64,000 nucleotides of DNA from Intoshia linei (GCA_001642005.1 LWCA01000026.1:14254-78253), one strand, 5' to 3'. Counted from the first letter of the stretch, positions 3,601 to 35,330 are shown. Numbers and translations: made by a program. Notes: generated by a model from the letters alone, not told the origin.

Positions 3601-6339
3601 TTGTTTTTATAGATCATAGATAATAATAATGTAATTTTAAAAATTACACACACAATCCATCTTTAAATATATACAACGCAAAATATCAATTTGATTGAAA
3701 AATATAGCAATTTTATGGATTTTCTAAAAAAAAAATCAAATTTAAATATTTCTTTAGCATAATATAATAATTAATAGAATTTATTAATTTATAGAATATA
3801 AATAAAATAATTATAGAATTCCAAAATAAATTTTAATATTATGCACTATTCTCATAATAAATATGATGTTTTATGAATAATTATTCAAACATATGTAAAT
3901 GTTATGTACTTTTAATTCAAATTATTCAAACATATGTAAAAGTACATAACAGTTACATTAACTCAAAAATGTTTATATATAATGTACATTAACATAAAAT
4001 TGAAAACAATTCATTTTAAATTTTAATAATTTAGCAATAATACAAAAAGTTGTTGGATAAGTTCCCTAATATAAATTTAAACCAATCTAATCGCTCTCAA
4101 TATCAAAAATTTAGAATGTTTCACTTGTAAAATATTTGTAATAAGAATGCAAGCTGATATTTTAAGTGTACATTAGGGTGTCACATTTTTTCGAAAATTT
4201 TAAAATTCGATGGCCACTTAGCACTAAAAGTGTGTATTTTTAAAATAGAAAAACTAATTCGCAATCAAAAACATTTCACGCTATCTATTCGAGTTGCGTT
4301 TGTCATTTTAAATATCACATTAAAAATAATATGGAGAAATTAAAAATTAACTTTATTTTAACGGACATTGGCGTTTAAGCTTTCAAACGTGGTCCGACTT
4401 TATAATATTGTTCTCCATATTTGAATCAAATATTGTGCCTTAATCAGAATGAATTTGATTTGGCACTCCATAACGAGCCACTATATTAGTTAGAATATGA
4501 TGAGCGACACATTCTGCGATCATATTTTCAATTGGAAATATTTCAGGCCAACCAGAATAATGATCAACCATGACCAACAAATAACGATTTTCTTCTTTAC
4601 TAAGTGGTAATGGGCCAGCGAAATCGATTTGCCATAACTAATTGAATTTAATAGATACTATTTGTTTTAATTTATAATTATAACGAAAAAACCCTGTTTT
4701 AAATAAATTACATTTTTGACAATTTTGAATAAAATAAAATAGAATAAATCGGTAACAGTTTTAATAATACTTTAATTTAAACCAGAACAATAAAAATCTT
4801 TCTTTATAGCTGACATTAATTTTTGAATATCAGAATGAGCAGATAAAGAACCAGAATGCATTTCACAAATTAGTTTATCTCGTAATACTATTGGTGCAAA
4901 CATAACTCCATATTCTCCAACTTATAACACACCTATGCCAATGACAGTATATAGTTTTTGTTTATGTATATTAGCTAGAGGAAAGTTGTATTCCTGCACA
5001 AAATCGATGCGTGTAACCAACATAAAAGAACTAGATAAAATAAGTTCTTCCAAATGTATTAAAAAAGTGACTTCACTGAAGGCTACAAGAACTGTTGTGT
5101 TTTCAAAAGAAAATATGTCTTCAATTCAAACAGATTTAAGTTTGAGTAACACACAGATTTTGACATAGCGGGTCATATCAGAGTATAAACTGGTGATAGA
5201 AATATTATTGAAACTCATCTTAAAACAAAATTGCAAAAAATCAATCACAGGTTAGATGACTTATTTACTCTTTCTAATGAAGAATTAACAATAAAAGAAC
5301 ACTTTCTAGAAATGGCAGAAAACAATACCAAATTAAAACCTCACATAATTTGCAATAATATTACTCAGCTTGTACAGAGACTTGAAAAAATGCGTGCTAA
5401 AAAATATAAAAATTTGAAAATTGGAATGGATGGAGGTGGAGGCTTTTTTAAAGTTTTTTTTACATTCAATTTTGATTTAATCAAAATTTATTATATTATG
5501 TAAATTTGTTTGAATTTGATCAATATCAATGATATGGAAATAGCAAATGTGAGACAAAGTTATAGTGATGAAATTGCATCAAAACAAAAAAAAGATCGTA
5601 GTGTCAATAAACTTTTCATTTTAGCAATGGTTCCAGGCATTCCAGAAAACTTTGAAAATGTGTTTAGTATTTGGCCAAAACTGGAAATAGAAAAATTACA
5701 ATTGCCTTATACAATAGCAACCGACTTGAAATTGGCGAATATAATCACTGGATTAATGGGTCATGGATCGAATCATCCATACAAATGGTGCGATGTGACA
5801 AAAGAAAATCTGTTACTGGATTGTGTGGGAAGTATTAGAACCCTAGGAAATATGAGAGAACTTTTCAAAAAATGGAATGAAGGTACCTTCATTAATAANG
5901 ATTTGTTTGAATTTGATCAATATCAATGATATGGAAATAGCAAATGTGAGACAAAGTTATAGTGATGGCATTGCATCAAAACAAAAAAAAGATGGTAGTG
6001 TCAATAAACTTTTCATTTTAGGCTAAAATGGTTCCAGGCATCCCAGAAAACTTTAAAAATGTGTTTAGTATTTGGCAAAAACTGGAAATAGAAAAATTAC
6101 AGTTGCATTATACATTAGCAACCAACTTGAAATTGGCGAATATAATCACTGGATTAATAGGTCATGGATCGAATCATCCATGCACATGGTGCGATGTGAC
6201 AAAAAAAAATCTGTTACTGGGTTGTGTGGGAAGTATTAGAACCTTAGGAAATATGAGAGAACTTTTCAAAAAATGGAATGAAGGTACCTTCATTAATAAT
6301 ATATATATTAATATAATAATATTACTATTAATTTATATA

Positions 6340-7885
6340 CAGTGGTTGCCAAAATGATAAAGCCACTCTTAATTACTTGATAATTTAGTGAATAACATTC
6401 GTAATAACTCAAAATTTTACAATGTGATAGTATACATTTTTATATTAATTAGCTATTATAATTTTAATTTCCATGATTTAATTAAAAAATGTTATAACTT
6501 TTATGATTTGACAATAAAATTTGAGCAACAAAATGATAAAGCCACTGGCAATTCGTAACGTTTATTGCACCATACCATTGATTTTTATCAATTTTCTGTG
6601 TCTAATGTATATCGTAAGAGAATATAATGTTTTTTTATAAAAAAATTTTAGATTAAAAATATATGAAATGGGTTAAGGTAAAAAATTAAATAACTTTGTA
6701 AAAGGGCAAATCCTAGCTTTATACAATGATGGTAAGAGTTATAGAAAAATTGGTATTATTATTGGCCGATCCAAAGATGTAGTTAAAAATTATTGTATAG
6801 ATTCCGAACAATACAGTAAAAAGAAATCAAGTGGGAGGCCTAAATTTATATCACCGCAAGATAAAAGGAGACTTTTGGGACTTGCTACACACGAAAAATG
6901 TACTGCAACTCAGATATCTATTAAAATGAATAATGCTATATCTATTCGCTCCATTCAAAGAACACTCCAACACACAAAACACATACCTAGATTATTAAAA
7001 AAACACAAAAAAAGCAGAATGTTTTTCGCTGAAAAAAATATATTAGAATCGACGGATTGGTCCAAAATTATTTGGAGCAATGAAAAGAAGTTCAACTTAA
7101 ATGGTCCAGATAGAATTCACTGCTACTGGCATAATCTAAGACAAGAATCAAAATTCTTTTCTAAGCGACAAGCTGAAGGTGGTTCTGTCATGGTGTGGGG
7201 AGGGTTTTCTGTTAGAGGAAAGTTGACGTTGGCATTTCTTGAAGCAAAGCAGGATAGTCACAAGTATCAAAATGTAATAAAAAAGTATTTAATTGACTCC
7301 AGAAGTAATATATTTGGCCCTGTAATTACATTTCAGCAACATAATGCTTCAATACACTGTTCAAAATCGACAAAATTGTTCATGAATGAACATCAAATAC
7401 CAATTCTCGAATGGCCATCATGTAGTCCAGATCTTAACCCCATTGAAAATATGTGGGGCATCATAATAAAGCGTATTTACAGGAAAGATGGCGAGATAAG
7501 ACAATTTTCGTTTAAATCGCAACTGCAGACAGAAATAATTAACGCCTGGGAGTCAATTCAGCCAATAATTTTGAAGAATATTTCAAATTCGATGTCGAAA
7601 CGGTGTATAGATATAATAAAATCGAATGGATGTAGTATTAATTATTAAATAATGTATTCATTTAATTGTTTTGTATTCTGGCTTTATCATTTTGTCGCTT
7701 AGTTTTTTTGAGAAATTATAAAAGTGCTAATATTTTTTAATTGAATTGTGAAAATATAAATTTTAACAGCTAATAATTATAAAAATGTATTATATTATCA
7801 CTTTGTAAAATTTTGAGTGGTTATGAATGTTATTCAGTTAATTATAGCGAAATTAAGAGTGGCTTTATCATTTTGGCAACCACTG
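6340..7885 (+). mobile_element. Tc1/mariner (Tc3-like, DD34E) element with ~205-bp IR/DR terminal repeats
   Basis: TA|CAGTGGTTGCCAAAATGATAAAGCCAC ... GTGGCTTTATCATTTTGGCAACCACTG|TA with TA target duplication; inner direct repeats at ~6525-6547 and ~7679-7699. Confidence 0.95.
6668..7648 (+). pseudogene. Tc3-like transposase, inactivated
   Basis: ATG at 6668, TAA at codon 3, then open (GKSYRKI HTH, SSGRP). Catalytic motifs read WSNEKKF (D>N), FQQHNA (D>H) and SPDLNPIENMW. Confidence 0.9.
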
Positions 7886-9048
7886 TATATATATAAATAT
7901 TATCCACTAGGTGTAAAAAAATTTACCAAGAAATTTGGAAACGTCATACATATTCCAATATTCCATGAAGAAAATGAATGTAAAATCTTCAATTTAATTC
8001 CACCGCCTGAATTACACTTGCTTATAGGCACTGTAAATACAATTTTTAATGCATTCAAAAAAATTTGGCAAAAAGCGGATAACTGGGTTACACTTTGCAA
8101 TATCCAACAGGAAGTTTACCACGTATTTACGTTACACGTTACACACCATTTATTGATTGATAAACTGCACTGTCCATATCCTGAATTTGTCATCGCATTA
8201 AATGANTGCTTATAGGCACTGTAAATACAATTTTTAATGCACTCAAAAAAATTTGGCAAGAAGCGGATAACTAGGTTACACTTTGCAATATCCAACAAGA
8301 AATTTACTACGGAGGAGTTTTTAATTGGAATGACTGTAAAAAGCTATTGCAACACACACATTTATTGATTGATAAACTGCACTGTCTATATCTTGAATTT
8401 GTCACCGCATTAAATAATTTCAATGCTGTTGTTGAAAGCTATACAAGATTATGCAAGCAAGCACATTTGAAAATTCATTATCATTTTATTAAATTTCTAT
8501 ATATTCAAGTTTGTCATAAATTTTTCAAAATGTTGAACTATGATTTATTTTTAGTATTTCAATGAAAATAATTATATTCAGTATAAAATGTTAAAAAAAT
8601 GAAAATTTAAATATTTTTTGCAGTAAAATTTCCATTTCTTGCATTTAAAAAAAACACTACTAAGAATTTTTTAAAATACTCCAGAAAGTGTACCGGTTCA
8701 GAAAATGTATAATTTGTAGACCTACAATTTTTTTCATCTAAAATTTATNTGTCATAAATTTTTCAAAATGTTGAACTATGATTTATTTTCAGTATTTCAA
8801 TGAAAATAATTATATTTAGTATGAAATGTTAAAAAAATGAAAATTTAAATAATTTTTTATTAAAATACTCCAGAAAGTGTACCGGTTTAGAAAATTTATA
8901 ATTTGTAAACCTACAATTTTATTCATCTAAAATTTATTCAGACAGACTGTGAGTGGGTGCTGATTTAGAAATTTATGAATTATGGTGGAATGGGGTTGGT
9001 TTAAAAAGGTTGAGAACCCCTGATGTATAATATGGACGAGCATATTAA

Positions 9049-9187
9049 CTCTTTCACTGTCTGGAATTTATGTTTTAATATAAATTTGTATAATTTTTAA
9101 ATTACCTATGTGAAAATGTATGAAAATAAAAGACTAAAGTTTTAATAATAATGCTGTGTATAGTATAGAATACAGACAGTGAAAGGG
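9049..9187. mobile_element. piggyBac-type MITE
   Basis: TTAA|CTCTTTCACTGTCTG ... CAGACAGTGAAAGGG|TTAA; same family at 20951 and 21650. Confidence 0.85.
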
Positions 9188-9333
9188 TTAAATATGTTGT
9201 GTCCACTTCAAAACTGTTTAATGAATTTTTTTTGAAAATTCAATTTCTTGTAAGAACATAAACAATATGTACCCAAAGCTATTTTAAAACGTTCCGAAAT
9301 GTGAACTACCCTAATTTATAAAATTAAATTTAG

Positions 9334-12111
9334 GTCGATTTGAGGATGATTTTATTGCCGACAGAATGACTCACTTAAATTATTGGATACACTATGCATG
9401 TAATCACCCTGTAATACGACTATGGCCAGTAATGTCACATTTTCTGACAAGCCAAGATACTAGTGTAAAAATTTTTACATTTATGGATTGATTCAAAATC
9501 TTTTAGAATTGGAAAGAAGGTAAACGCATAGCTGAAAAAAGCACATATATTGTAAGAATAAGAAAGATTTTTAAATTCATATTATAGGGTTACAGATATC
9601 TATGTTATATTGATACATTGGGTGTTGAAATGCACTTAAAAAATGCGTAATTCTCGTAATAATTACAATTTAATTTTGTATATAGGTCTACAGATATCGG
9701 TCGATGCGACGACATTGTTCAAAAAATTAAACAACCTTTTCGTAACATCCAAAATACTATGGAAACCTTCCATAAAATTGAACTTCCAATGGTTGGAAAA
9801 CACTACCTACGACTATCTAACAATTATCAACTAATTAGTGAAGGATTAAACATGACACCATCAACGAGTAATTTATCTTTACTTATTGTTAATTAAAACA
9901 TTTTGGATACAATTATAAAATATTCGTATTAATGCTTGTAATAATTATTTACAATAATAATAAATATAATAAATGTATAAATTAGGATCCAATTAAGTTG
10001 TCACATTTTTTGGTCATTTTGACCATTGCATCGGTAATTGTAGTTAAATGTGTGTATTTTTATAATAGAAAAACAATTAGACAATTCAAAACATTTAATG
10101 CTATCTATTCGAGTTGCGTCTGTCATTTTATTTTTATTTACATTTTTATATGATAAAGTTAAAATGACAAACTCGAATAGATAGCGTTAAATATTTTTTC
10201 TACAAACTATTCTTAATATTAAATAACTGAACAGATTGAGAAATAATTATCCTTGATTCTTAGATAGCTGTGACACCCTAATATACATATAGGGATTTAA
10301 AAAATTATAATTTAATATTATAAAATGTAGTTATATATAGATATGCGATATTTGAGCGGTATTTTGGATGAACTACAAAAAAAATTTAAGAATGTGGGTA
10401 CATTGTGTTGCGAAGGTAATCAACTAGAAAACAAACGTACTGCTGATACTATGCTTTTTTGTCTTAATGTCTCTACTGGGCTAAAAAATGTCATTACATC
10501 TCACCAGGTGAAATATTTATTTAACTTTTAAATAAAAACGTTTAGCTTGGCTCTCAATTTTACCAAGACACTCACCCTCTTCGCCCTGATAAAGATTTGT
10601 ACTATGCCAAACAGAGATACTCAAATCTAACGCTTTCAACTCAGGTATTTTCAATTATAAAAAAAATAATATAAATTAAAAGATGAAATAAGGTTTGCGC
10701 TATAAAAGTATATGTGAGCCATTCCCTGCCATAAATTAAAAAAACGATACATATAAATGATGTGCTACCATATTTCCTTTTACGTTGTTTGTTAGTGTGA
10801 TTCGTACATTTTTAGGATATTACAAAATCATTATAGAAAATTTAATATTAAAAAATTATGACATCAAAAAATAGAATCTATTATATTTTAAAATACATTA
10901 TCAAAAGGAATGCATCATAACTACGCCAATATTGACTAAAAAATAATAACAGTACATGATAATGTTCAGAAAATTAAATTCTATCGAATATGCGTAAAAA
11001 TAATGCGGTTTGAATTTAAAAACATGAGTTCATTATTAAAATATATAATTATATGTGTTAATTAGAATTAAAAAATTATACTTATATTAATTTTAATTAA
11101 AATGTTAATTTATCAGAACGTAGAAGTGAAGAACCGTTTTGTAGTTATAATTTACAATTTATTAATACCATACATGTATAACGTAATTATTAAATTCAAT
11201 TCGTAACGCCGTAACATTTTATGCGTATTTTGAACTTATAGTCTATTCTATTCTGAATTTATAGTCTAATTACAAGAATAGATTTTTCTGAATTTCAGAA
11301 ATATCTGTTAACTACGTTCTTATTCAATCTATTACAAATCCTACTTTAATTAAATATTCACAAGAATCTCCAAAAAACAGATTTTCAAATTTTATCATAT
11401 TTTTTGCTCGTAACAACGTAACGGTTTTTAACTGTAAACGTACGTTGTAGTATTTACTTATATGTAAAATAGTGAAAATAGCCATGTTGCACGGTATCAT
11501 ACGCGCATTTTAAGTCTATCTATGAGTATGAGTCTTGGATATTATTTCCTGTAGGTCACTTAAATTGAAATATTTACATTTTATTTGCCAGAGAATGGCT
11601 TATATTAATATCTTGTCGGTTATGTATTATCATCTAGGTCTTTAGAGAGTGAACTTTTAAAAATTTTAAAAAACATTAAATAGTAATGTTCGTTTCCCAT
11701 AATGTCATTGCATCAGGTTGAAAGCCCTAAAAGTCGACAGATCATTTTGTATTTTATATTTCTTCACATAAAACTTAACATTTCTTATAAGATGAAGAAA
11801 TGATACAAATGAAACCGTGCCCTTATTTTAAAGTTTAGATTGAGATAAAAATTATTATTTATCTAATTTATTATTTATTAAAGAAAATATTATCACTAAT
11901 AAATTATAGGCTGAAATAAATCAATATTATGCTTCAATCGCTACCCAAATCAAGAATGACATCAAAAATTGGCTTGAAGTTTCCATAAAATTTCATAATA
12001 TGGTACATAATTTATTCTTTAAATAAATTTAAACTGATATATTGTTTTATTTAGCAAATGAAACTATTCCAAGATGTATTAACTTTAGTAGATAATGATT
12101 CCAACAATTAA
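9334..12111 (+). CDS. SNX9: Sorting nexin 9/18/33 family (end of PX domain plus BAR domain), 5'-partial
   Basis: Phase-consistent GT-AG exons 9334-9464, 9507-9551, 9588-9646, 9686-9867, 10341-10507, 10546-10644, 11910-12002, 12055-12111. Translation GRFEDDFIADRM..CNHPVI..HFLT..NWKEGKRIAEK and ..STQAEINQYY.. matches the SNX9-family signatures GRFEEEFI..RHPV..WKxGKRKAE and LQAEMNHF. Confidence 0.85.
9991..10283. mobile_element. Non-autonomous foldback derivative of the CATTAGGG-terminus transposon, in an SNX intron
   Basis: First ~140 nt resemble 4171-4310; the right end is GTGACACCCTAAT; there is an internal inverted copy of CTATCTATTCGAGTT..GTCATTTT. Confidence 0.75.
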
Positions 12112-13560
12112 TCTAATTAAACATCCATTTAGTATATAAATAAAAATGTATCTTTGTTCTTCCCACACTTAGTATTATTATGTCATTATTAAATTTATTA
12201 ACAAAATCAATTAGGGAAGAATTAATTCCGTTAAACAGGTTCCCTTAGTGCAGATTTAGAAAATATCAAATAAAAATTTCCATAGCAATCAGTTACTAGA
12301 CTATAGTAACCAGACCGTATAACAATCAATTTTAAATTAGGAGTCGTCAAAGATATATGTATCCCTGTATGACTTTTTAGGACTTTTTAGTTCATAGCAC
12401 CCTTTGTACTGGCGTATATTAATTCCTTTGCATATTTATCGTACTACAATTTAAAAATTATTAAAAATAAAAAGTTACAAAGATAATTATATATGTAAAT
12501 ACCATGGAAATGACGTTTGAGTTTGGAAAACGTATTGTACGCCGTCTACTATTCAACGTGTGTAAAAATTTCAAAATTTATAAAAATCAAAATAATTAAT
12601 ATTTTAAAATAATGGCTACTGATACTACTATATAAATACAAAATACTGTTACACGCTTGAACATAGATACAGCTTAAGTTATAATGTTTAAACTATAAAA
12701 ATGAATCAAGAGCTCTAAATTTAACTAGGAGTTACTTTTCAAAGAAAATTAAAACACAAAAATAGACGTAAACTAAGTTATTTTAAAAATTCGACATTGA
12801 TATTGCACGTTTATTTTTAAATGACAAATATTGACTCAACAGTATTGATAAATTCAGAAAATTATTATTTCATGTTACATGAAATGAATATTTCATATGA
12901 TTTTAAATGTGGCCTCGGTTTAAAATAACAGTTATCATTTATTTAAGTAATTTAATTAATTACATTAAAATTTTTTAATATTTAGTCCTGTATATTAGTA
13001 TAGTTGAATCAGCCACAACATATAAAATTTGTCCAATTCGATACACATTTGATGAATCATTCGTCATTCATATGCAAAAGGTTTCTTATACCAATTATAA
13101 TATGCAAAGCGCTTACATCAACAATATACCATGTGTTATGGAATACAAATATATTTTTTATTTTAATGTGACATTTTTTGAACAGCTCAAAAGTGGTTGA
13201 AAATGTATAATAAAACGGTTTTTAGAAAGTATTTATTTAGTAGATGAAATTTTAATCCTTTGAATTGCATCAACTAGCAAAGTATCTTGTAATATATAAT
13301 GGAAATTGACAATATAAAATTGTATTTTATTGATTGCGTCTTGCTATATATTAATTTATGAACCTACATTTATTATTTATAATATATTTATTAATACAGA
13401 AAAGTTTAATAGAATTATCACATGATGATATATTTAATTCTCTCAGTAACAACAAATTGAAAAATATATATCCGAATCTTGCCATCAGGTTTGAAAGAGC
13501 TCACATATTTTTCCCTAAAACGCATTTGAATGAAACGGTAATTATTAGTATTATACAGAA

Positions 13561-13790
13561 CTAGCTTGACTGTTATGTACTACGTACAAACAGCACCTAG
13601 CTCTGCCGAGGGCACATTTTTATTATACCAAAAAAATAAATTCATGTTGAAAATCTAATTTAAAAATCGTATTATTCACTATTATCAATCCTTTAAATGA
13701 GTGGTTCCCAAACTTGTTTCAGGTGGAACCATCATATCACATTACTTTTTACTTTAAAGTGAATTACGTTATCTTAATTTTTTGTTTGTG
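13561..13790 (-). mobile_element. Non-autonomous Helitron 3' end fragment
   Basis: CTAGCTTGACTGTTATGTACTACGTACAAACAGC is the reverse complement of the hairpin+CTAG end of the 26075-27265 element. Confidence 0.75.
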
Positions 13791-14072
13791 AGGAGGAGAC
13801 ACTGACATTCTAAGTTTTTCAGAACGTTTTTTGCTATCCCTGATGAATCCTTAAAGTGAACGGTCATTCGCGTTAAGGTCTCAGTTTTATTATTATTTAT
13901 TGTAATTATTTATTTAAAATAGGATATATGGTTTCCTGAAAAATGTCAATTAACTACAAACTACAATATACCTTATTGTACAAATTATGCCTCATATAAT
14001 AATGACAAGTATTTTTATTATCATTGTAATTTAACCCTAGAATTCGAACGGTGGTAGTTTTATCGTTTAATA

Positions 14073-15091
14073 CAGGGGTGGGTGACGATTCAACAATCGG
14101 TGGCCAAATCTGTCTAGCGAAAATTACTAAAGGCCATAAAAAAAAATAAAAATAATTGTTTTATGTATTTGCATAAATTCTTTTTCTTTCATATGTTTAT
14201 TTTACAAAGAATTGTTGCTCTTAAAATCAGTTCAATGAAGAGATTAAAAATTATTTCCTCAGAAAAGCCATCTATTTTGAACTGTTGAACTTGTTTCTTT
14301 ATTGAAGTTTCTTTCAAATATGGAAAATGTATCTGTGAAATATTTTTCTTGTTTATAAGTAATTTCAAAAGTGTAATGTGAGCTCGAAAAATTTTGATTT
14401 TTTTCTAAACCCTATAAATGTTTTTTTGATTTTCTTGTAAGAACATATTTAAATCATTTTGTTTCAACATTATATCCAACAAAAAGGCCATGTTTAGAAG
14501 AAAATCTGCATCAGTCAATATACATTCTTTCTCTAAAGCTTCAAAAAAATTGATTATAGGTTGTTTTAATTCAAATACTCTTTTTAACACCTTTGCTTGA
14601 GATAGCCATCTAACGCTAGAATGATATATGATGCCGTTTTTCTCTTGAAATTCTTTATTTTGCAGCATTGTGCGAAATTATCTGTGTCGTGTAGATTTAA
14701 AGAGAATAAAAATTACAATTTAATTGATTTTCTGGAATGTATCATCGAGAAGAACAGATTTGGCGCATAAGCTTTGCTGATGGAGAATACAATGGAAAGA
14801 ATATATTGTATGTTGGCTGAAATTTTTTCGCAAATGTGCAACAAATCCTGAATTTTTACTAAGCATGGCAGGTGCTCCGTCTGTACAAATACTTATTATA
14901 TTTTCTTTTTCAAGATAATATTGAACAAACAGCTCGTTGACTTGATTATAAACATCCAATCCTCGAGCCTGTCCAGTGATCGTCTGCATACCTAACAATT
15001 CTTCAAAAAGATTAAAATTTTTATCTATAACTCTGGCAAATATAAGTAATTGGGCTGAATCAGTCGCATCTGTTGATTCATCAATAGCCAA
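14073..15091 (-). mobile_element. hAT (Buster/SPIN/GTF2IRD2-like) transposon fragment with degraded transposase
   Basis: Motifs AIDESTD..AQLLIFAR, ICTDGAPAM, HCILHQQSLCAK and VRWLS on the minus strand, with stops. CAGGGGTGGG terminus at 14073; truncated at N 15092. Confidence 0.9.
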
Positions 15092-15092
15092 N

Positions 15093-15711
15093 TTGTGAAT
15101 TCATGTTTTGGCAAAACTTTGAAAGGAAATTATAAACAAGTGATAAGTAATTTTAAAGAAAGTTTTTGCAAGCTTGACATAAGAATAACTCCAAAACTAT
15201 ACTCTATTTTTTTCCATATCTTTGATTTTTGTGAACAAAATAAATCAGCACTTGGTATATGGTCTGAGCAAGCCTCAGAATCTTTGCATACAAATTTTAA
15301 AAAAACCTGGGCTAAGTATGCTGTAACAGAAGTTAATAAAGACAAGTATGGTCAACAATTGCTGAAAGCTATACAAGATTATGCATGCAAGCACATTTGA
15401 AAATTCATTATCATTTTATTAAATTTCTATACATTCAAGTTTGTCATAAATTTTTCAAAATGTTGAACTATGATTAATTTTCAGTATTTCAATGGAAATA
15501 ATTATATTCAGTTATAAAATGTTGAAAAAATAAAAATTTAAATAATTTTTTGCATTGAAATTCTCAATTTTACATTTTTTGCATTTAAAAAAAAGCCAAC
15601 TAAGAATTTTTTTAATTTTTTTTAAAATACTCCAGAAAGTGTACCGGTTCAGAAAATGTATAATTTGTAGACCTACAATTTTTTGTCATCTAAAATTTAT
15701 TCAGACAGGCT
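15093..15711 (+). mobile_element. 3' part of the RAG1/Transib-like transposase (catalytic E region) plus downstream sequence
   Basis: ITPKLYSIFFHI..LGIWSEQASESLH (ORF 15095-15400); the sequence after the stop is near-identical to 8440-8950. Confidence 0.8.
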
Positions 15712-15738
15712 ATACATAATGACTGAAACTCCAAACGG

Positions 15739-18700
15739 ATGGTAACATGTATTATACAAATTATATTATATCAAAATGATTGTCTTGCAAAACTGTTTAA
15801 AATAATTTAACCAATACGTAGAAAGTAAAAATAAAATTGTTTTTATCATTAAATATTAATTATATTATAATAAATTATACCAGATTTTTAATGTATATAA
15901 AATAATCATTGATTAAATTATTTAGAAAGTATACTTTTTATTCGATAATATTAATGTCATAAAAGTGGTTTCTAGTGTATAAGGAACTTTCTAATATATT
16001 GTTCGAATATATACCGAGTTATTATTAACTTGATCAATTCAATATCTTATTCACCTTACTTTAGTAAGTAAATTATTTTTAAGTTGTAAATGATATCACA
16101 TATTTTAATAGCTTTTTCGATGGTTTGAGTACCACGATCATTACATCTAATTAAGTGTCTAAAAAAATGTGACTTAAAAATAATTATATAATTTAGTTGG
16201 TAATTATCAATAAAATTGAATGTTCTCTAAAATTTAGAGTCTAAATGATATAATTAATGATAAAAGTCAAAAACTAATAACAAATTTGAAAATTAATGTA
16301 TAAACAATTATAGTTGGTATGAAATTGATTTATACTTGCACTAATACATTAGTATACACTTGTACATTATTGTATATAAATTTCATTACACAATCAAAAC
16401 ATACTTTATTTAGTCGGTATACTGTATTAAATATTTATAAAAATAAAACCAAAAACTTATATCATTAACATGCCCATGGAGAGGGTAGAATAGGGATATA
16501 ACGGGTTGAAAATTTTAAATTAATAGTTTATGAATCAACTTATGATTGATAGTTTCTTTATTTAGCCAAAATTATATATTGATCGGGTATATAGATGTAA
16601 TTTAATATGTAATATCATACTAATTTAAAAATTTCATAAAAGTTTTTTTTATAAACCTATAATACCCTTAATATATTTTTGTAATAATTATATATAATTT
16701 TAGTAAATTATAAAATAATAGTTGGTAAATTCAAAATTCTACTAAATTAAATTAGATATATTACACCAAATATTCATAACGTGAGCAGTAACGCCCCTAG
16801 GGGCGCTGGAGCTATTTGGGGGTCGGTATAAAAAATTTTAACTTTTGGGGCGCTGGACTAAATTTGGTATTATAATATATTATTAATATTTTATATTTGT
16901 GTATTGACTTATACTTTGAATAACTATTATAATTATTTGGGATATATAAGTAACTATATTACATTATTATAATATTTCATGATAAAATGTAAAATCAGTT
17001 TTGACCGGGAATGCGAGATTTCTAGAGTTTAAATTTTTTATATATATCAACTGAAATAAGCTGTATGAGAATAATCCTTTTTTTTAATTGTAGGACCAAA
17101 TTTTCAAATGTTGTCTTTTAATAAAATATTTAGGAAAAAAAATATATAAATACTAAAATGCTTTTTTGACTGTGAAGACGTCAATTTTTTAGATTCAAAT
17201 TTTTTCTGTGTGTTAACTGGAGATAGATGTATGTGTAGTAATTTTTTTGAAAATTCTAATACTTTTTATTTTTAAAATAAAGGGTAATCTGGGGTTTTGA
17301 TAATGAACATGAAGTTTTTTGTGATTACGATTTGTCATAATTCGTCATAACTCATAATAATTATGATTTATTAAAATATCACAGAATCTATGTTTATAAG
17401 ATTCTATAACATTTTTAATTTTTGCAAAAAAAAATTATTTGGGGTTTTGACTCTAAAGATATACCGTTTTAAAATCTGTATAAGATTGTATATCTTTTTA
17501 AATTTTATAACTGGCTTGATTTAAAAAAAGGATAATTCTGGTTTTGACCGGCAAGATGTAAGAATCTGAGTTTTACATTTATTTTAATTTATGTACCGTA
17601 AAAATCTGATTTGGAATTTGTGTTTGTTAAAATTCTAGGTCTGTTAGTTATTGAAAAAAACGGTAACACACACAAACAGACAGTCATTCAATTTTATATA
17701 TAAGTGTAAGTAAGGATAACTAAAATTAATAGTATATTATTTAGTATATTAATCTATATTTAATTTAAAATAACTCGAAAATTGTTCTACAAAATTTTGG
17801 GAAATACTTTATATCATTTATATTTTATTTTACATAAATTTTACGTTAAACGTATTTTTGGAGTAGATTTTCTTCAATATTATTTATTCAACTATATATT
17901 ACCGTAATATTATTAGCTGGTAATAACTACAAAAATTTAAAATGCTTAAAATAAAATTAAATTTACAATAAATTTGATATAATTACATGTATTTATTTTA
18001 TTTATATACTTTTATATATATTTTATTTATAGTGCGTAAATATTAATTTCATTCCACACATGATATGACTTAATACCACATGATTGATTATAAACCTTAA
18101 ATCTCCAAACATGTGTTTAATCTAAAATGACGATTTTCATTATCATAGATATTTCATACTATAATTATATAATATATAATAATAACTAGCTTGACTGTTA
18201 TGTACTTTGTACAAACAGCATCCTAGCACTGTCGAGGGCGGACTTTTTTAATTCTACCAAAAAAATAAATTCGATAATAAAATCTAACTTAAAAATGGTA
18301 CATTCACTATTATCAATCTTTTAAAAGACTAATTCTTAAACTTATTTCACAATGGACCCGTCATTTCACATTTTCTATTAATTTAAAGTAAATTGAAACA
18401 AGTTTAGGAACCACTCCTTGAAAAAATTGATAATAGTGAATAGTAGGATTTTTAAGTTAGATTTTCAACGTGAATTTATTTGTAGAATAAAAATGTGCTC
18501 TCGGCAGAGCTAGGTGATGTTTGTACGTAGTACAATACAGTCAACCTAGTATATAATATATCCGCCCGCCTCATAATTGACGCCACTGGTCTATATACAT
18601 TTTATAATATACAATGTAGTAATAATGTAACAATTTTCTTAAAAAATTCCTCGAATCTTGTAACGAGTTTTTTTAATTAATCAATTATATAATTCAAGGG

Positions 18701-21700
18701 CTTAAAGTTTTTTAATTTATATTGTTTATAATAAATAAAATAGTATTGTAATAAAAGTATATTTGAAACAGTCTGTAATATTAATGTTATGAATTTATCA
18801 ATTGCGATTTAATCCATAGTTTACCATCAGTGCTTTTCAATGGGTGTCACAAACTTTTTAAAATTTATTATATATTATTTTTCATCACTTTATATATTAT
18901 TCAAATTTCGAAAAATGTAAAATTTTTAATTACTTTGAAATTTGTGTCGCCAAATCAAACAGATTGGAGAGCACTGCTATAGACAGTCATAGCTAACCCA
19001 ATTATTTATTTTTGTAATTTATAAGATTTTCTTAATTTAAAATTATTATCAAAAGTTGGTAAACATTTAATCTACTTTATATTATACATTGTCTTATTTA
19101 TATTGTAATTATAAAACTGATAATGAATTAATTAATGCATTTCTTACATAGGGTATATAATATATAAAATAATAAAATATTAGTTGGTATTAATTAACTA
19201 CTTACTATCATTACTACATATCCAATTATTATCTAATTCAATATTTATTATTTTTTGGGTCAATTTTCGCAAACCATGCAAAAACCTTTACGCAAAGTTG
19301 CAGTGTGTATGGATTAGGGTTGGCAATCGATAAAAATTTAATTTTATTAATATTTTTCTTTAATTTATTTTTAAATTATTAATGAATTTATTTTAATGCA
19401 ATGCCTATTATTATAATTATAGTCATTATTTTTCTCAAGTATATCCTAATTCCTAATCTGAATCCGGATTCCTAACCTATATAAATCAGTTTTTTTGTCT
19501 GTCTGTCTGTTATTGTTTATATCAATAACAAAGAGATATAGGATTTTAACAAACACAAATTCCAAGACAGTTTTCCATCTCAGCAACTACAATTATCCTT
19601 TTTTTTGAAAATCAAATGAGTGCTAGAATCTAAAAAAGTATACACTCAAATACAGATTTTAAAATCATGAACATTCTCATAAATATAAATTTCAAAAAGA
19701 TATATCTTAAGAAACAAAACCCCAAATCACATTTTTTTTAAAAATGAAAATAGTACTATAATTTAAAAAAAAATTACACTTCATACCGTTATCTCCAGTT
19801 AACACATACATACATTTGGTCTCACTAAAAAATTACATTAAATTGACATTAAAATACTATTTAAATAAAATTTAACATTAAAATTTTATCAGGTAAATTG
19901 ACAACCCTAGTATGGATATTTTGTAATTTAATGAAAGCTATCAATGAAACTCTAATCAATTTATTTAGCTGGTATATTTACGCTTAAATACATTTATAAA
20001 GGAATTAAAAAGCGACAATTTAAATTATATTAATAATATAAACATTAACCTGTGTCCAAAAACAGCTTTTTTTGAGTAAACAAAAAGTTGCCAATGGGGA
20101 AAGATGAGCAATTATGTGTATGTTACGAATATGCTTTTTATAATTTTTGAGATCAAAAAAAACCACCCACTTTTGCTCTAAATGTCCCCCCGAAAAGTGA
20201 AAATATTTTTAAAATTGATATTAAATTAAAAATTGTTGGGTATTAAGTTAAATAATTTGTATTGTGTTTACATCTCTGATGTGACAAAAATTGTCCTCTG
20301 TCAGATACAATTTTAAAAATGACCCATCTATTAACAGAAATAGTCCTATTATTATTAAAAAAAAATATATGAAAAGACTATAAATTGACATAATAAGTAG
20401 AATTTGGGTCAATTTAACTCGCGGGCCATAATTTTACGAACGCTGGATTAGTCGATCGCATCAAAAACTTATTGGCCCTGATGCAGTATAATGGATTCTA
20501 AATTATAATACATTGATGAATAATTATAATTAATCAATTCTTTCTAATTTTATAGGCGGTAAATTATCTGTTATTAATTAATGAATAATACTTTATAATA
20601 CATAATGTATATATAAAATCATTATGTGACAGCAGTTCACACGTTATCGTTTAGATCAGAGGTGGGATAGCTTTGACTGTTTGAAGGTCGCACTAACGTT
20701 CTAAACAAATTTAATAAAGCCGCACCTTTCTAAACAAAATTTAATCAAATACAGCAGTGCGTCGCATGGGGTGACTGAGCACCTGAAAAAGGAAATAATT
20801 TTATTAGAGGTGAATACAAAAATTTTTAGCATTTGTTATTTAATTTAGTAAAATCTTATGAAAAAAAACCAAAATTTTACTAAACTTTTAGATCAAAAAT
20901 CCCTCTATCTTATACCAAACTAATAAAACCAAATTTTACCAGCCCCTTAACCCTTTCACTGTCTGTGTATTCTATACTATACATAGCAATTTCACTTCAT
21001 TCGTATGTGTATTCTATAATATACACAGCATAATTTTGAAAAACTTTATTATTTTATTTTCATACATTTTCACATATGTAATTTAAAAATAATACAAGTT
21101 TAAATTAAAACTAAAATTAAAATTAAATTCCAGACGTGTAGTGATACATCATAATATAGTATCAGACAGTGAAAGGGTTAAAGAAAAAAACTGCTTTACT
21201 AATATTTTTCTGAAAAATCCCATTTTACCAAAAATTATTATTTTTAAAATAATTTAAATTGTTCAGAAGGCCGCATTTTCCTCACCTCTGGTTTAGATGA
21301 TAATCTTCAATCGGTGATAGCGTGCGAACATTCAGTTAAGCGACATAATCATCGATTTGGTTAATTACAATAATAATAATTGTAATCATAATATTTATTT
21401 TTTGACAGTATTTTTGTGGTTGTTTAATTACAATGGTCAAAAGTAGGGTTTTTAAGTGATAATTTTTTAAAGATAATATTGAGACGAAAATTTTGTAGGG
21501 TTTTTAAAGGATAATTTTTTTTATGATTTTTTAAATATTATGAAGATAATTTTGAGACCAAAATTTTATAGGGTTTTGAAGGGAATATGTTTAAAATTTT
21601 ATGGCATCTTCTAAATCTTTTAAAAATGAGGGGAAAAAACTTCCCTTAACGCTTTCACTGTGTGGAATTTATGTTTAAATTTCAATTTGTATAATTTTTA

Positions 21701-23060
21701 AATAACCTATGTGAAAATGTATGAAAATAAAAAAATAAAGTTTTTCAAAATTATGATGTGTATAGTATAGAATACACAGACAGTAAAAGGGTTAAAAACC
21801 CTACAAAATTTTGGTTCCAAAAATTATGAATATAACATAATAAAATATTAATAAAGAAACCCACTAAAATTTAATGAAAAAATCAATGATAAATTTGTAA
21901 AATCGATGATTATGTCGCTCTAAGATCTATCGCTCCCAAGAATGTCTCTCAAATGTATGTCGCTTCAGGGAACGGACGTCATCTTCAATGAGTGGTAGCG
22001 ACATTTGTGTGTTGAAATTTTGTATTTTATTTAGTTCAATATAAATTAAGAATTATTTTTTTGTTAATTGATAGAAAACCGATTAATCATTGATACAATA
22101 TTTAACCACTGCGGTGGTTAATACTGTACACTAGAATATACTCATTAGGTGAAATTCCGTAAATGTATTGTTAACGAATTAAAAAAAAGGTAACATAGTT
22201 TCTAAAAATTTTACTTCTCGATTACATGAGTGTTAATGGTTCTATCAAATTCCAATATTCGATACATGTCAATGGATTTATACCAGGATTCACAAAAAAT
22301 ATATATTCATCGATAGTTACTTATTTTTAGGGAGTAAATCACAAAATTCATATTAATTTCATAACAATTTATATATACATTATTGGATTTTTTAATGAAA
22401 TTTAAATTAGTATGTAATTAAAACTAATCATTAAATTATTTTTATCGGTTAATGGATATTTATAGATAAATTAATATATTTATTTAAAGTAAGTAAATTC
22501 AATTTTTTTCATACATATTTAATTTCTTACAGTATATTGCTAAAAATAACTTTTACAATAGCAATGAGTAAAAATAAATATTTCAAAATCATAGGTTAAG
22601 GCTTAACTTAAGCTTCTTATCAATAACTATTGATTTATAATTTAATTTGTATTAATTTTAATATATTAAGTCGGTATAATAATTTACATGTTATTAAATC
22701 ACCATTAATAATATACATATATAAAAAGTCGATTACAGGGTTTAGTATAAAAATTAAATGTTTTAGATTCATAATTATACGTATTCCACGGAAATAAATA
22801 ATACGGCATATTGTATTTATTAATTCAGAACAAAAACATACCAATAATATAATTTTTCGTTTAGGCTTGGGTAATGAACTTTATAAAATACATTTATACT
22901 CAAGATAAGTTCAACTTTTGTATTTCCATTTCATAAATTAATACATAAATAATGATTAATATATTTAATATTCTATTTATAGGTGCAACTGGATTCTTTA
23001 CGGTAAGTTTGTGTAAAATTATTTATATAAGAATTTTAGCTTGATAAAAAAGCCGCATAA
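15739..23060 (+). CDS. Putative extreme micro-exon gene encoding a short signal-peptide-like or hydrophobic peptide
   Basis: 18 AG-NNN-GTA motifs plus 6-, 10-, 11- and 20-nt AG..GT units on the + strand; ATG|GTAAC at 15739; last acceptor at 23039; AATAAA at 23090-23095. The exact exon set and frame are not resolved (see findings). Confidence 0.6.
16990..17716 (-). mobile_element. Non-autonomous Helitron 5' portion
   Basis: Minus-strand 5' end A|TCCTTACTTAC..TATATAAAATTGAATG; the body matches the 26075 family. Confidence 0.7.
18186..18549. mobile_element. Two inverted Helitron 3' ends forming a foldback
   Basis: Starts CTAGCTTGACTG.. (minus copy) and ends ..CAGTCAACCTAG|T (plus copy); arms are ~150-200 nt. 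Confidence 0.75.
19315..19909. mobile_element. hAT MITE containing a Helitron 5' fragment
   Basis: TAGGGTTGGCAAT..ATTGACAACCCTA with a perfect 8-bp TSD GTATGGAT; Helitron-like sequence at ~19470-19815. Confidence 0.85.
20657..21290. mobile_element. hAT MITE with a nested piggyBac MITE
   Basis: CAGAGGTGGG..CTCACCTCTG with 8-bp TSD GTTTAGAT; a second copy lies in the opposite orientation at 40481. Confidence 0.9.
20951..21177. mobile_element. piggyBac-type MITE
   Basis: TTAA|CCCTTTCACTGTCTG..CAGACAGTGAAAGGG|TTAA. Confidence 0.9.
21650..21791. mobile_element. piggyBac-type MITE, inside a larger element with AGCGACATAATCATCGATTT inverted repeats (21339 and 21919)
   Basis: TTAA flanks; TIR CGCTTTCACTGT / ACAGTAAAAGGG. 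Confidence 0.8.
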
Positions 23061-23170
23061 CTTTGTTATGAAAATAATTTAATTTTTTGAATAAAAATAT
23101 ACATACATTCACTCTTGTTAGCTTTAGTTAGATACATTAGTTTTAAATATCTTGTATATTTATATAACAG

Positions 23171-24049
23171 TTAAACAGTCTGTTTAGCAAGTTTATTTTC
23201 CCACTCTATTGGAGTATAAGTATTAAGAGTTAAAGCATGAATTTTGGGTAATTCATTTTGAATAGCCTTGTGTATCATTCTATTATATTTATATTAAAAG
23301 TTTTAAAAGTATTGTAAGATCACTATACTATATTACAGGAAATATGGGCCAAACAACAAATCAATGGGTTAATAATTATTTATATTTATTTATTAATTTA
23401 TAATTGGGACTTGAAGAGCCGTTCGGTCACAACATCGACACTATTAATTAGGGTTATTCATTTAATATTTTTAAAATTATTAAAAACTTTAAATTAAAAA
23501 ATTTCACTATTAGACATTGAAATGTGTAATATTTGTATTAATGACATTGATTACAATGTTTTTGTATAAGGTAGGGTCAAAAAAAATTTTCAGATTTTGA
23601 TAGACAAAAAATTGGTGAAAATTTCTGTTTTACGGAGAATTACTATAATTTAAAAAAGTCTACTTAATCTGAGTAAAAAGAATTTCCAAAAATTTGCATG
23701 TTGATTGAATTTAACCAATTTTTGATATAAAATTATTAAACAAAATAGTAACTTAAATGATTACAGTCGTCTTTCAAACTCATATTTTAAAATTGTAAAT
23801 TACTTGTGTCTATTCAGTAAAGCATTATTGTTAAATTCAGAAGATACTATCAATACATCAAGTTTTATTCCACAAGCACAGTTTTTAGTTACATCAGTAA
23901 TTTCCTACATTTATAAAATAAAATAAATGTGATAAAACGTAAAATAAAATTTTTATTCAATGAATAATATTTTATAAAATTACTAGCACAGATGGACAAA
24001 ATATCTTTTTTAATTCACTATATACAATTTTATCCATTCGATTTAACAT
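23171..24049 (-). CDS. BOLA2: BolA-like protein 2, paralog B
   Basis: Exons 24049-23984, 23904-23804, 23279-23171: MLNRMDKIVYSELKKIFCPSVL/EITDVTKNCACGIKLDVLIVSSEFNNNALLNRHK/MIHKAIQNELPKIHALTLNTYTPIEWENKLAKQTV*. BolA motifs IVS..F..LL.RH and IHA..T.TP.EW. Confidence 0.9.
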
Positions 24050-28193: not shown

Positions 28194-31100
28194 ATGGAAC
28201 AACATGACATTGGAAATACCAAGCCTATGGTTATTGAAAATATGAACAAGCCATTCAACGAAAATCAACTCACAAAGTATCCGAATCAACCAATTATTCC
28301 TCAGAATGTTACGAATCCGGTTTTTAATTAATTATCAATCATACATATTAATTTTTTCAATGTATCAATTATTATTCTATAATACATGTATCATTTTAAA
28401 TACAAAGTTTCATATATATTTATAATTTATAAATTTTTTAACTTGCATTTATTAGTTAATTTGTTATACTGCGTGCCACGACACAAAAGCAGAACTTATT
28501 CACCCCGAGGTCACCCGAAAAATAAAAATAGCCTCCTAAAATTTTGAGAAACGATGCGTAATGTCTATAACTCTAACCATTTCTCTAAGACTATTGACTT
28601 ACATTTTAAATTTAACTCACAAAATATTTATGAAATTCAAGAATATAATTTTTTCAATGCACAATTAAGAAAAATGAAGCCCCATTTGTCAAAAATTTCA
28701 TTGACGTCCCTATAACAAGATCTTGTATGGTAGGTTCGACTCTGCACGACAGGGCAGTGTCAGTTGACTTGTATATTTTTTTATGAGAAACATTATCCAC
28801 GTAATCCTCAATTATGTATACTTGTTAATTCAGATGGATGCCACTTTAAAATTATTGATTCAATTTTCGATTTAGAAGTTTATCAATAATTATGGAACAA
28901 TTGTTGGACAATTGAAGGGAAATGGAGTACCCCAATATCCTATTCAAGGAATGAATCAAATGAATTATCAAGTTCCAAGTCAAAACGTATACATGGCACA
29001 GAATCACATGCAAATACCAAATCCTAATGTTCAACTTCCTCCAATGAATATTAATCATCAGATGCCTTCAAATGTCAATGTAAATCAAAATGTTAGGTTT
29101 ATGCAGCCGAATATGCATGTTCAAAACAATAGAACACTTCCAGTTGTGGCGAATAAAAGTTATTCGATGCCAGCAAGAGACAAAACATTAAGTTTGATTA
29201 ATTTAGATTACATTAATTTTAATTTTATAGAAGAGAGGCCTAATCAAAATGGAACTTTTACACCAGAGACTAAGAAAAGGATTGATCGTAATATAGATGC
29301 AAAAAAAAGAAAAGTTATAGATAAAACTATACCTAAAATGGTAATGATTTGATTTGGATTCATTAATCCTTACCGTATAAAGTAATTTAGCTAAAAACGC
29401 ATGTCTGTTTGTTTGTAACCGTTTAAGAAAGTGAGATGTGTAGAATTTTAAAAATTCCAATTTCTGGTACAGTTTTTCGAGGGTAAGGTTTTATTTTTAA
29501 AAATTCAGTCCTTAAGCCTTCGACTTATTTACTAAAAATTTTGAATATTTTTAAAAAAAATAATGAAAACAAACATTTAAAATTAAATTTTAATTTTAAA
29601 TATAGTTTTTGATTGTGAATGCAAATTTGCCTCGTTTTAATATATTGTCAAAATTTGCATTGTTTTAATTTATTATCGAAATTTTTAATGGAAATTTGGA
29701 TTCATATTGACTGAAGGATTAAGGGTCAAAAACCCAATTTATGCTTTTTTTAAAAATCAAATGAGTCTTCAAATTTAAAACAATATACGATCTAATACAT
29801 TTTAAAATATGAACGTTATATTAAATTTAAATTTTAAAAACTTAAGTCTTGATGGCCCAAACCTAAATTACCTGATATGTATAAAAATATATATTCTGAT
29901 ATTGATTTTAAAATCATGAAACTTATCATAAATTTTAAATTTGAAAACTTATATCTTCACAGTAACAACCCAAAATTAAAAATATAATTAATAATTAAAG
30001 TATATACCATGATGAAAACAAAATTTTCAATTTTAGGGGTCCATGACATCTATTACTTTGGGAAGCACAGTTTTAGATTGTTTACTTAACAATTTTTAAA
30101 TTGTAATAATTTACTATCGCACATGCTGTTGCGATACATCATTATGTATGTATCATCATTTATTTTTTAGTTTACATGTTAATAGAACTGGGTGGGTCAA
30201 CAAAATTTTGGTAAAATGACAATTAGAAAAAAATATATTTCTGAATATTATAACTATTTTGTTTATTCCATAAGTTTCATTTCAGGAGTGACCTCGAGCT
30301 TTGTAGTTTCGGCTATGGTTAATGTAACTAAAAAGTTGCTAAAAAGATTAAATTCAGTGATTTCACACACACAAATGTCAACTCTAAAAACAATCAAGGA
30401 CAGTCATGTAGTTTCAAAATAACCAAAATTTTTTAATTACAAAAAGTTACTTAGAATGTATTATATATTTATATATTAACATGTACCTTGGGAAGAGCCA
30501 AACATACTCTGTCGAGACTCCCAGAAAATTAAAAATAGATTCCTAAAATAATTTTCGTAAACCATTTACAATTCCATATATCCACTGACCATCTTCACTG
30601 GTCTGGAGTCCAGGCTAAACAATTTAATTTTGATAGTTATCATATTGAAAAATATTACCAAAATTTTCGGCGTTGTACAATTTTAGATGTGAATCCCCGC
30701 GTTCATATTCGCATATTAATTTTATAAATTTGGTTTTATTTCACTTAATTTTTATATTTTTGCGAAAATTAAGTTTTTTAAAACTTATTACTATTTTAAT
30801 TCTGTAATAATCGGAATCGTTTCAACTGAATTATATACATTTTTTTAATGATTTTAATTTCTAGATCAAAATTTTGGTACCAGAAGTAAATGCTTTTGAA
30901 ACTCTGTTGGAATATGAGAAAAAATTGGATTTAACCATGAATTTAAAAAAATTGGACCTACAAGAGGCATTAAAGCGACCCGAGACTACTAGAGAAAAAA
31001 AGACCCTAAGATTATACATTTCAACTACATACTACCCACCAGGAAAATCTGATTCAGAAATTGCAAACATTGGTTCTTGGGATTTAAAAATTGAAGGACG

Positions 31101-31992
31101 TTTATTAAACGAAGACAAAAAAAATCATAAAAAATTTTCAAATTACTTTAAATCACTTGTTATTGAATTGGATAGAAATCAATATGGACCGGACAATCAT
31201 TTAGTTGAATGGCACAAATCTGTAAACAGTGGAGAAACGGATGGTTTCCAAGTAAAAAGGATGGGAGATCAAGATGTAAAAGTGACGATACTGTTAATGT
31301 TAGATTACCGGCCGCTAAGATTTAAATTGGACGTAATACTATCTAAATTACTTGGAATTCATACAGACACTATGGCTAATATAATCAATGCTCTCTGGAT
31401 TTACATAAAAAATCACAAATTGCAAGACCCTGTTGATAGATGGTATATAAACCTGGATTGTTACCTCCAACGTATTTTTGAAGTTCCGAGAATTCAATTT
31501 TCTGATATACCACAATTACTCAAAATACACTGTCATCCTCCGGAACCAATAGTTGTAAATTACGTCATTCAACCAGATGCCCAAAATTCTCAAAAATGTG
31601 TTTCCTATGATGTTCAAGTAGAAACAAATAGTGATTTAAAAGATTTAATAAACAAATTTCTCGCATCATTTGAAAAAAATGACCAACTTTCTAATATGAA
31701 TGTTAAAATTTATGATATTATTGAAAATTTGAATAAATTGAGCGTTAGTAGAGAGTTTTATGTTCAATTTGCAAATGATCCTCAACTGTTCATTTACAAT
31801 TGGATTCAATCTCAAGCTAAAGATTATAAAATTATGACTGAAAATCTTACCAACCCTGAAGAACAACGTTATTCTAAATTTTACAATAAGCCCTGGATCA
31901 ACGAGGCTGTTTCCCGGTATATTTATTCTCAATTACAATATAAGCGTATGGAAGTTGAAAATATTCTCTCTAATCGTAAAACTAATAATTAA
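28194..31992 (+). CDS. SMARCD1: SWI/SNF complex subunit BAF60/SMARCD (SWIB domain)
   Basis: Exons 28194-28319, 28876-29340 (possible in-frame 39-nt intron at 29192-29230), 30865-31992. Motifs LLEYEKKLD, WDLKIEGRLL, YGPDNHLVEWH, ETDGFQVKR, LWIYIKNHKLQDP, NPEEQRYSKFY. Confidence 0.95.
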
Positions 31993-35322: not shown

Positions 35323-35330
35323 TGAATAAT

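Follow-up and report, generated by a model that had tools for sequence, protein, structure and literature searches.

The micro-exon genes (MEGs) of schistosomes and the cassette effector genes of aphids are the described systems closest in structure to the locus considered here, an array of candidate exons, mostly just 3 nt long, on the plus strand (15700-23150) of a 64-kb window of the Intoshia linei genome. The window, that is, the whole stretch of DNA analysed, is AT-rich (G+C of about 21-34% per 2-kb bin) and riddled with transposons, and comes from a genome sequence of 3,520 contigs and 41,603,068 bases. Schistosome MEG exons are mostly 15 bp long, the minimum being 6 bp in the text and the range 3-81 bp in the abstract of the same article; they are mostly multiples of three, a few genes having one or two exceptions, and the signal peptide is the sole consensus motif conserved across MEG proteins (PMC10526429). 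The likeness of the Intoshia locus to these genes is one of structure only, namely a putative parasite gene, invisible to gene finders, with tiny exons, introns far longer than the exons and a small, hydrophobic and probably secreted product. Indeed, 24 candidate exons of 3-20 nt, with canonical sites and all on one strand, give the locus a MEG-like architecture in this structural sense, in which exons of at most 36 nt make up most of the coding region; no conventional 5′ signal-peptide exon of the MEG type was found, and the micro-exons themselves would encode the hydrophobic segment. The difference is that the predicted exons are mostly of 3 nt, in runs of at least 11, and would encode the leader itself.

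In aphids, 33 of the 37 exons of KQY1a, a gene that extends over 45.7 kb, measure 15 bp or less, and the cassette effectors join a conserved signal-peptide region to divergent C-terminal regions encoded by mini-exons (PMC7495047). The KQY and KHI genes share with the Intoshia locus the very large size, the dozens of miniature exons and the small secreted proteins, but runs of 3-nt exons were not reported there and the lineage is unrelated. Isolated 3-nt microexons, neuronal and other, have also been described in animals, an example being the 3-bp microexon of RPS24 (abstract of PMC12207440). They show that the spliceosome can include a 3-nt exon but are isolated cassettes between the normal exons of large genes, and not arrays of consecutive one-codon exons.

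Recursive splice sites, also called ratchet points, are juxtaposed acceptors and donors in long introns, which are thereby removed stepwise. They resemble the present units in having juxtaposed acceptor and donor signals within long stretches, but their spacing is 0 (AG-GT), whereas here codon-like triplets would be retained between the two sites. The zero-length exon typical of recursive sites is rare at the locus, where AG-N0-GTA occurs 2 times on the plus strand against 22 for AG-N3-GTA. Compared with all these systems, a leader encoded by consecutive exons of one codon each would take a known kind of gene structure to a new extreme. Among the papers searched, none combines 'Intoshia' and 'microexon'.

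Three-nucleotide units on one strand

An initial annotation of this DNA had proposed a micro-exon gene on the basis of 18 plus-strand AG-NNN-GTA units. All 18 are present where it had placed them, as are its 11-nt, 10-nt, three 6-nt and 20-nt units, an acceptor at 23038-23039 and an AATAAA signal at 23090-23095. Motif counts over the locus gave 22 AG-NNN-GTA sites on the plus strand and 1 on the minus strand, with 0-8 per strand for all other spacings of AG-N(k)-GTA from 0 to 12, so that the plus-strand peak at a spacing of three, which the proposal implies, is clearly present (22 vs 1). TAG-NNN-GTA occurs 14 times on the plus strand and once on the minus strand.

Background rates were derived from the remaining window (both strands) together with 85 kb strand-bases of gene-rich loci of the same genome. 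Against these rates, AGNNNGTA (AG-NNN-GTA) was observed 22 times with 4.3 expected (Poisson P 1e-9) and TAGNNNGTA (TAG-NNN-GTA) 14 times with 1.1 expected (Poisson P 2e-11), the initial hand estimate having been about 2. The density of the three-base spacing is therefore not that of the minus strand or of other regions, and the local excess survives correction for the windows, strands and spacings open to examination. Four of the 22 sites were not among the 18 listed initially (AG at 16480, 17483, 19302 and 21778); these have poor context or lie inside repeats (17483 and 21778).

The best explanation for the plus strand at about 15.9-23.1 kb is, in our view, a micro-exon gene, which we regard as probable from the layout of the sites; that the triplets are spliced exons of some gene, all variants of this reading counted together, appears if anything a little more probable. 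Concerning the initial proposal, the chain of 3-nt splice pairs, on one strand and in the genome's own consensus, stands, but the start exon and the N-terminal reading do not.

Splice signals

Splice matrices were built from 29 introns in chaperonin (PF00118) genes of the same genome (loci L002-L031), each called as the shortest stretch from GT to AG whose removal gives back an open frame that matches the profile; the calls are our own and not taken from annotation. These introns are 27-158 nt long, with a mode of 36 nt, in keeping with the median of 57 bp given for Intoshia linei introns in a review (PMC6543705). The donors read G-GT(A/T)(T/A), with GTT rather than GTA in 10 of 29, and the acceptors are T-rich (TTTAG), with T at -3 (TAG) in 24 of 29. 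The set may serve as a species-specific splice model.

A scan with these position weight matrices (PWMs) was run for acceptor and donor pairs, with thresholds at the 10th percentile of the scores of real sites; in what follows, the strict scan means that both sites exceed their thresholds. Strict pairs exactly 3 nt apart number 9 on the plus strand of the locus, with 0.38 expected (Poisson P 3e-10), and 1 on the minus strand; the corresponding figures in the remaining 56.5 kb of the window are 2 and 4, and gene-rich control loci have 0.047 such pairs per kb. Spacings of 1-30 nt other than 3 show no excess of PWM-qualified pairs, and the 6-, 10- and 11-nt units are therefore without statistical support of their own.

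The surroundings of the units carry further marks of splice sites. More specifically, at positions not used in the selection, T at -3 is found in 64% of units and in 23% of 64 control AGNNNGTA sites, from which the units also differ in being poorer in G on the upstream side and in having A/T at positions +4 and +5 of the donor. Of 25 acceptors, 18 are preceded by at least 25 nt free of AG, which is true of 38% of background AGs in the region (p = 6e-4), and branch-point-like motifs occur at about the frequency seen in real introns. The ordinary introns of the genome share the same signals, which makes this an independent match to a splice model. The triplets themselves go beyond splice consensus alone: 13 of 22 units start with T but only 3 of 29 real exons do (p = 5e-4), and the eleven central triplets (16197-20558) consist of T, G and C only, without a single A (P ~1e-7), a composition that fits codons for hydrophobic residues.

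Repeats within the locus

Five repeat insertions, which together make up 37% of the locus, occupy its long gaps. A dispersed repeat with many copies at 68-79% identity lies at 16961-17682, in a gap of 1192 nt, and an inverted copy of it at 19496-19859, in a gap of 782 nt. The 736-nt gap holds a non-autonomous, MITE-like element of about 400 nt with inverted arms (18152-18561), which has many genomic copies and a related copy at 13559-13721. Another dispersed repeat, with 8 listed copies at 80-89% identity, lies in a 584-nt gap (20036-20405), and the 1590-nt gap contains a non-autonomous element (20932-21808) with 116-nt inverted arms (21003-21118 and 21666-21781) and at least 30 genomic copies.

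The initial annotation had placed its units in the spacers between transposable elements (TEs), and every unit indeed lies outside the five insertions (P ~2e-4); the repeat matches within 16771-22140 all sit between units. The gaps are long because dispersed repeats were inserted into them, and the layout is what introns would look like after mobile elements had invaded them. No direct-repeat family joining the modules was found, the modules not being copies of each other, and the repeat-free 5′ part (15759-16770) has no other match in the genome.

Candidate exons

All units are on the plus strand, and their scores are given below as acceptor/donor in bits. Nine 3-nt units passed the strict scan, namely AAA at 15926-15928 (TTTAG-AAA-GTATAC, a strong unit; 6.9/7.5), TAA at 16065-16067 (5.2/6.4), which is not a stop in the sole frame open throughout, TTG at 16197-16199 (9.3/5.0) and 16314-16316 (5.7/5.7), TCG at 16414-16416 (9.5/5.4), TGC at 18033-18035 (7.8/6.0), CTG at 19969-19971 (8.9/6.8), GCG at 20556-20558 (5.6/6.4) and TCG at 22671-22673 (7.5/5.2). 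Others score lower on one side or both, such as TTG at 19184-19186 (4.2/5.1), GGA at 22331-22333 (5.2/1.1, a weak donor), TAT at 22411-22413 (4.8/4.3) and TAA at 22490-22492 (4.0/5.9), the last being out of frame in the open reading. Acceptors are weak for TTG at 16722-16724 (2.2/5.9), CTG at 17917-17919 (2.0/4.2) and TCT at 18772-18774 (2.0/4.6), which has a CAG acceptor. Two units are doubtful: AAA at 15822-15824, with a weak acceptor (1.2/4.2), and TTG at 19056-19058, with an AAAAG acceptor (2.3/6.0) and 14 nt that by eye resemble a repeat-family unit described below.

Among the longer units, that of 11 nt (16112-16122; 3.8/3.2) has modest scores, a GTT donor and an ATG at its end, and that of 10 nt (22149-22158; 2.5/3.7) is needed by the frame and has no support of its own. 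The 6-nt units are CAATGA at 22562-22567 (4.2/4.2), GGTTTA at 22739-22744 (1.4/4.3, a weak acceptor) and GCTTGG at 22865-22870 (10.2/3.1), and there is no excess of this length. The 3′ end of the array has strong sites: a 20-nt exon at 22983-23002 with a GTAAGT donor (6.4/7.7, strict scan passed) is followed by a 37-nt intron at 23003-23039, of the modal size for the real introns of the genome (acceptor 6.7), and by a putative terminal exon at 23040-23110 with an in-frame TAA stop at 23058-23060, AATAAA at 23090-23095 and a predicted 3′ end.

Some 80 nt downstream of the putative poly(A) signal, another 3-nt unit scores well (TTTAG-CAA-GTTTAT at 23188-23190; 5.8/6.7); it may continue the 3′ end in an alternative form or be there by chance.

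Reading frame and start

Joined by script and translated, the units do not give the N-terminal reading 'MKKLTFSM...' proposed initially, in which two frames are mixed: the TAA unit that comes next in the frame ATG(15739)-AAA-AAA is a stop, and the frame that gives ...TFSMLLSLL has D-E-K-I upstream and no Met there. The second of the two proposed C-terminal readings (LLAVKFR...DKKAA, then a stop) was recovered with all units in order. A single frame is open through every listed unit to the terminal stop; its first ATG is at 16120-16122, at the end of the 11-nt unit, and starts a 38-codon open reading frame (ORF) that begins with MLLSLLCSLLLA and ends in ...DKKAA, with the stop at 23058-23060. 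The AAA, AAA and TAA units lie 5′ of this first in-frame ATG, and with one base donated by an upstream exon they would add K-I-T-F-S before the Met.

Dropping any one 3- or 6-nt unit preserves the frame, the lengths being symmetric; the 11-, 10- and 20-nt units are asymmetric, and omission of the 10-nt unit leads to an early stop. It is possible, at rather less than even chances, that a signal or anchor peptide has its hydrophobic core spelled out by at least 11 consecutive single-codon exons, so that exon skipping could add or drop single residues. On the predicted exon chain, the putative 38-codon reading also has a second hydrophobic stretch and, in ...DKKAA, a KKxx-like C-terminus.

No stop interrupts any of the three frames across the eleven A-free central triplets, which leaves a slim chance that the locus is a real micro-exon gene with another exon set or frame, for instance a Val/Ala- or Cys-rich one in which some units are unused and whose 5′ exon might lie on the 5′ side of the 10.9-kb repeat (4827-15758). 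The upstream units, open in the long frame given one donated base, would suit such a variant, but just one frame reads without interruption across the complete set of listed units as far as the terminal stop, and no candidate upstream exon stood out.

Genome-wide occurrence

Same-strand neighbour pairs of TTTAG-N3-GTAA within 5 kb number 25, against 3 for N4 (hand count over the first 100 places listed), and the pattern forms same-strand clusters among these places, with 6 members at C197:2220-9968(+), 5 at C217:2611-8146(+) and 7 at C261:20787-30855(-). Further clusters lie at C207:18257-19286(+) and C159:2397-6973(-), and among the matches listed none were seen in the control with 4-nt spacing. 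These five clusters are likely sister arrays of 3-nt exons, judging by spacing and strand. The genome-wide peak at a spacing of three is thus borne out by clusters at 3 nt and not at 4 nt, but not by the total, which is only about 10% above that for N4; it follows that three-base units are not a genome-wide background feature.

The search for AGTTGGTA pairs returned mostly members of a repeat family with units of 30-33 nt; about 5 matches are plausible sister sites, while the control gave 3 matches, and this pattern is, like the triple-unit pattern below, only mildly informative. The family is dispersed and often tandem, with units of the form ...CCTTTTAG-AGTTGGTAAAACTGGATTTTT..., and is found in the window at 55815-55905 and on C121, C380, C413, C1570, C1688, C1751, C2242, C2525, C2533 and C2970. 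Each unit contains an acceptor-like TTAG and a donor-like GGTAAAA, and therefore contaminates genome-wide searches for pairs of TTG micro-exons. One possibility is that the family represents TE subterminal repeats.

Evidence weighed

The case for a micro-exon gene is weakened by a number of observations, which concern the start, the frame, the signals and the wider genome. The first exon proposed initially, ATG-GTAAC (15739-15746), lies inside the end of a dispersed repeat (15715-15758), and its donor is weak at 2.8 bits, the median of all GT sites being 2.3. A genome search matched 15715-15758 at 14 or more other loci with 86-97% identity, so that it is the end of a dispersed element, of which a search for terminal inverted repeats found no inverted partner in the window. 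This start exon was therefore rejected, which leaves the gene without a supported 5′ exon. Likewise, the open frame was rejected as evidence, since it is retained in 32% of permuted unit orders, which makes its continuity not significant, and in 81% of random 80% subsets of units. As for the 'textbook signal peptide' of the initial annotation, a hydrophobic reading is present, but it arises in two of three frames of T/G-rich triplets, and the signal-peptide look is accordingly weaker evidence than it seems.

The lack of a supported start exon and the non-significant frame continuity favour an alternative in which the splice signals are real but belong to a non-coding transcript, or to a long repeat-laden intron or untranslated region removed stepwise in a recursive-like manner, the triplets having no meaning as codons. 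The tiny size of the ORF, the AAA, AAA and TAA units that precede its first ATG, and the repeats in the long gaps would all suit such a transcript. We nevertheless regard it as unlikely: classical recursive sites abut, and that spacing was seen just twice here; the A-free central triplets and their first-base T exceed the splice consensus and fit hydrophobic codons; and in one frame no unit introduces a stop before the terminal one, which AATAAA follows.

Further points against the micro-exon gene come from the signals themselves, six or seven 3-nt units having weak acceptors (1-2.3 bits). The gaps, of 44-305 nt without repeats and up to 1.6 kb with them, exceed the modal intron of 36 nt, and the non-repeat 'intron' sequence has a T/(A+T) of 0.51, compared with 0.58 in real short introns. 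The terminal region (22940-23140) found only its self-match in the genome and so provides no evidence of conservation from a paralog. Genome-wide, TTTAG-N3-GTAA occurs 1,183 times and TTTAG-N4-GTAA 1,074 times, a difference of only about 10%, and the former is no commoner than its reversed control. Three TAGNNNGTA units with gaps of 35-65 nt gave 7 genome matches against 3 for the control and 0 at a spacing of 4, an enrichment that is only mild.

The weak acceptors and these genome-wide totals of TTTAG-N3-GTAA against its N4 and reversed controls speak for another alternative, in which the array is not spliced at all and represents a compositional accident or decayed repeat DNA, for example of the 30-33-nt family with its ...TTAG-AGTTGGTAAAAC... 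units. That family is present on many contigs and once in the window, and unit 19056 has, by eye, 14 nt in common with it. Such an origin is nonetheless distinctly unlikely: the local excess (P 1e-9 to 2e-11) is confined to one strand and one spacing, the flanks are dissimilar to each other and to any other locus, the triplets vary (TTG, CTG, TCG, TGC, TCT, GCG and others), and the units are spaced at 75-140 nt and not at 30. Moreover, a decaying repeat would not selectively retain its splice dinucleotides together with AG-free zones and T-rich positions -5 to -3.

Other features of the window

The window is rich in mobile-element remains. These include a DDE_3 transposase ORF (6875-7648), fragments of Ty3/gypsy-type RNase H and integrase zinc finger (35322-36089) and a weak DUF4371 match (14720-15091; E = 3e-4, under the Pfam cut-off). 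A 401-bp tandem duplication lies at 5504-6299. Of the long ORFs in the window, just one clearly has the look of a cellular gene, an intron-less ORF of 372 codons with a SWIB/MDM2 domain on the plus strand (30874-31992; E = 4e-19). A scan for bacterial promoters and terminators was discarded as irrelevant to a eukaryote.

Proposed model and significance

In the micro-exon gene that we propose, about 15-18 exons would be just 3 nt long, each flanked by a T-rich acceptor ending in TAG and by a donor that reads GTA(A/T). Eleven consecutive triplets (16197-20558) would most likely form the hydrophobic core of an N-terminal signal or anchor segment, at one residue per exon, and the 10-nt exon, more 3- and 6-nt exons, the 20-nt exon, the 37-nt intron and a short terminal exon would complete the ORF of about 38 codons. 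Where introns are very short, as in this genome, splice sites may be paired across each intron (intron definition). Simultaneous occupation of a donor and an acceptor separated by 3 nt is hardly feasible, so that the introns would probably be removed sequentially, with the exon growing by one codon at each step. Five dispersed-repeat insertions would later have swelled some of the introns to 0.6-1.6 kb. Transcription, splicing, the reading frame and the 5′ exon are all predictions from the DNA in this model.

If it is true, the locus would be the finest-grained split coding sequence described, and one of several such arrays in the genome of an orthonectid parasite. The 3-nt exon would then be the normal building block of a gene and no longer an occasional curiosity, and intron-defined splicing would be able to build a coding sequence codon by codon, which would raise the order of intron removal and the recognition of sites 3 nt apart as questions. 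Annotation and read alignment, finally, would be missing small and probably secreted or membrane proteins of the parasite.

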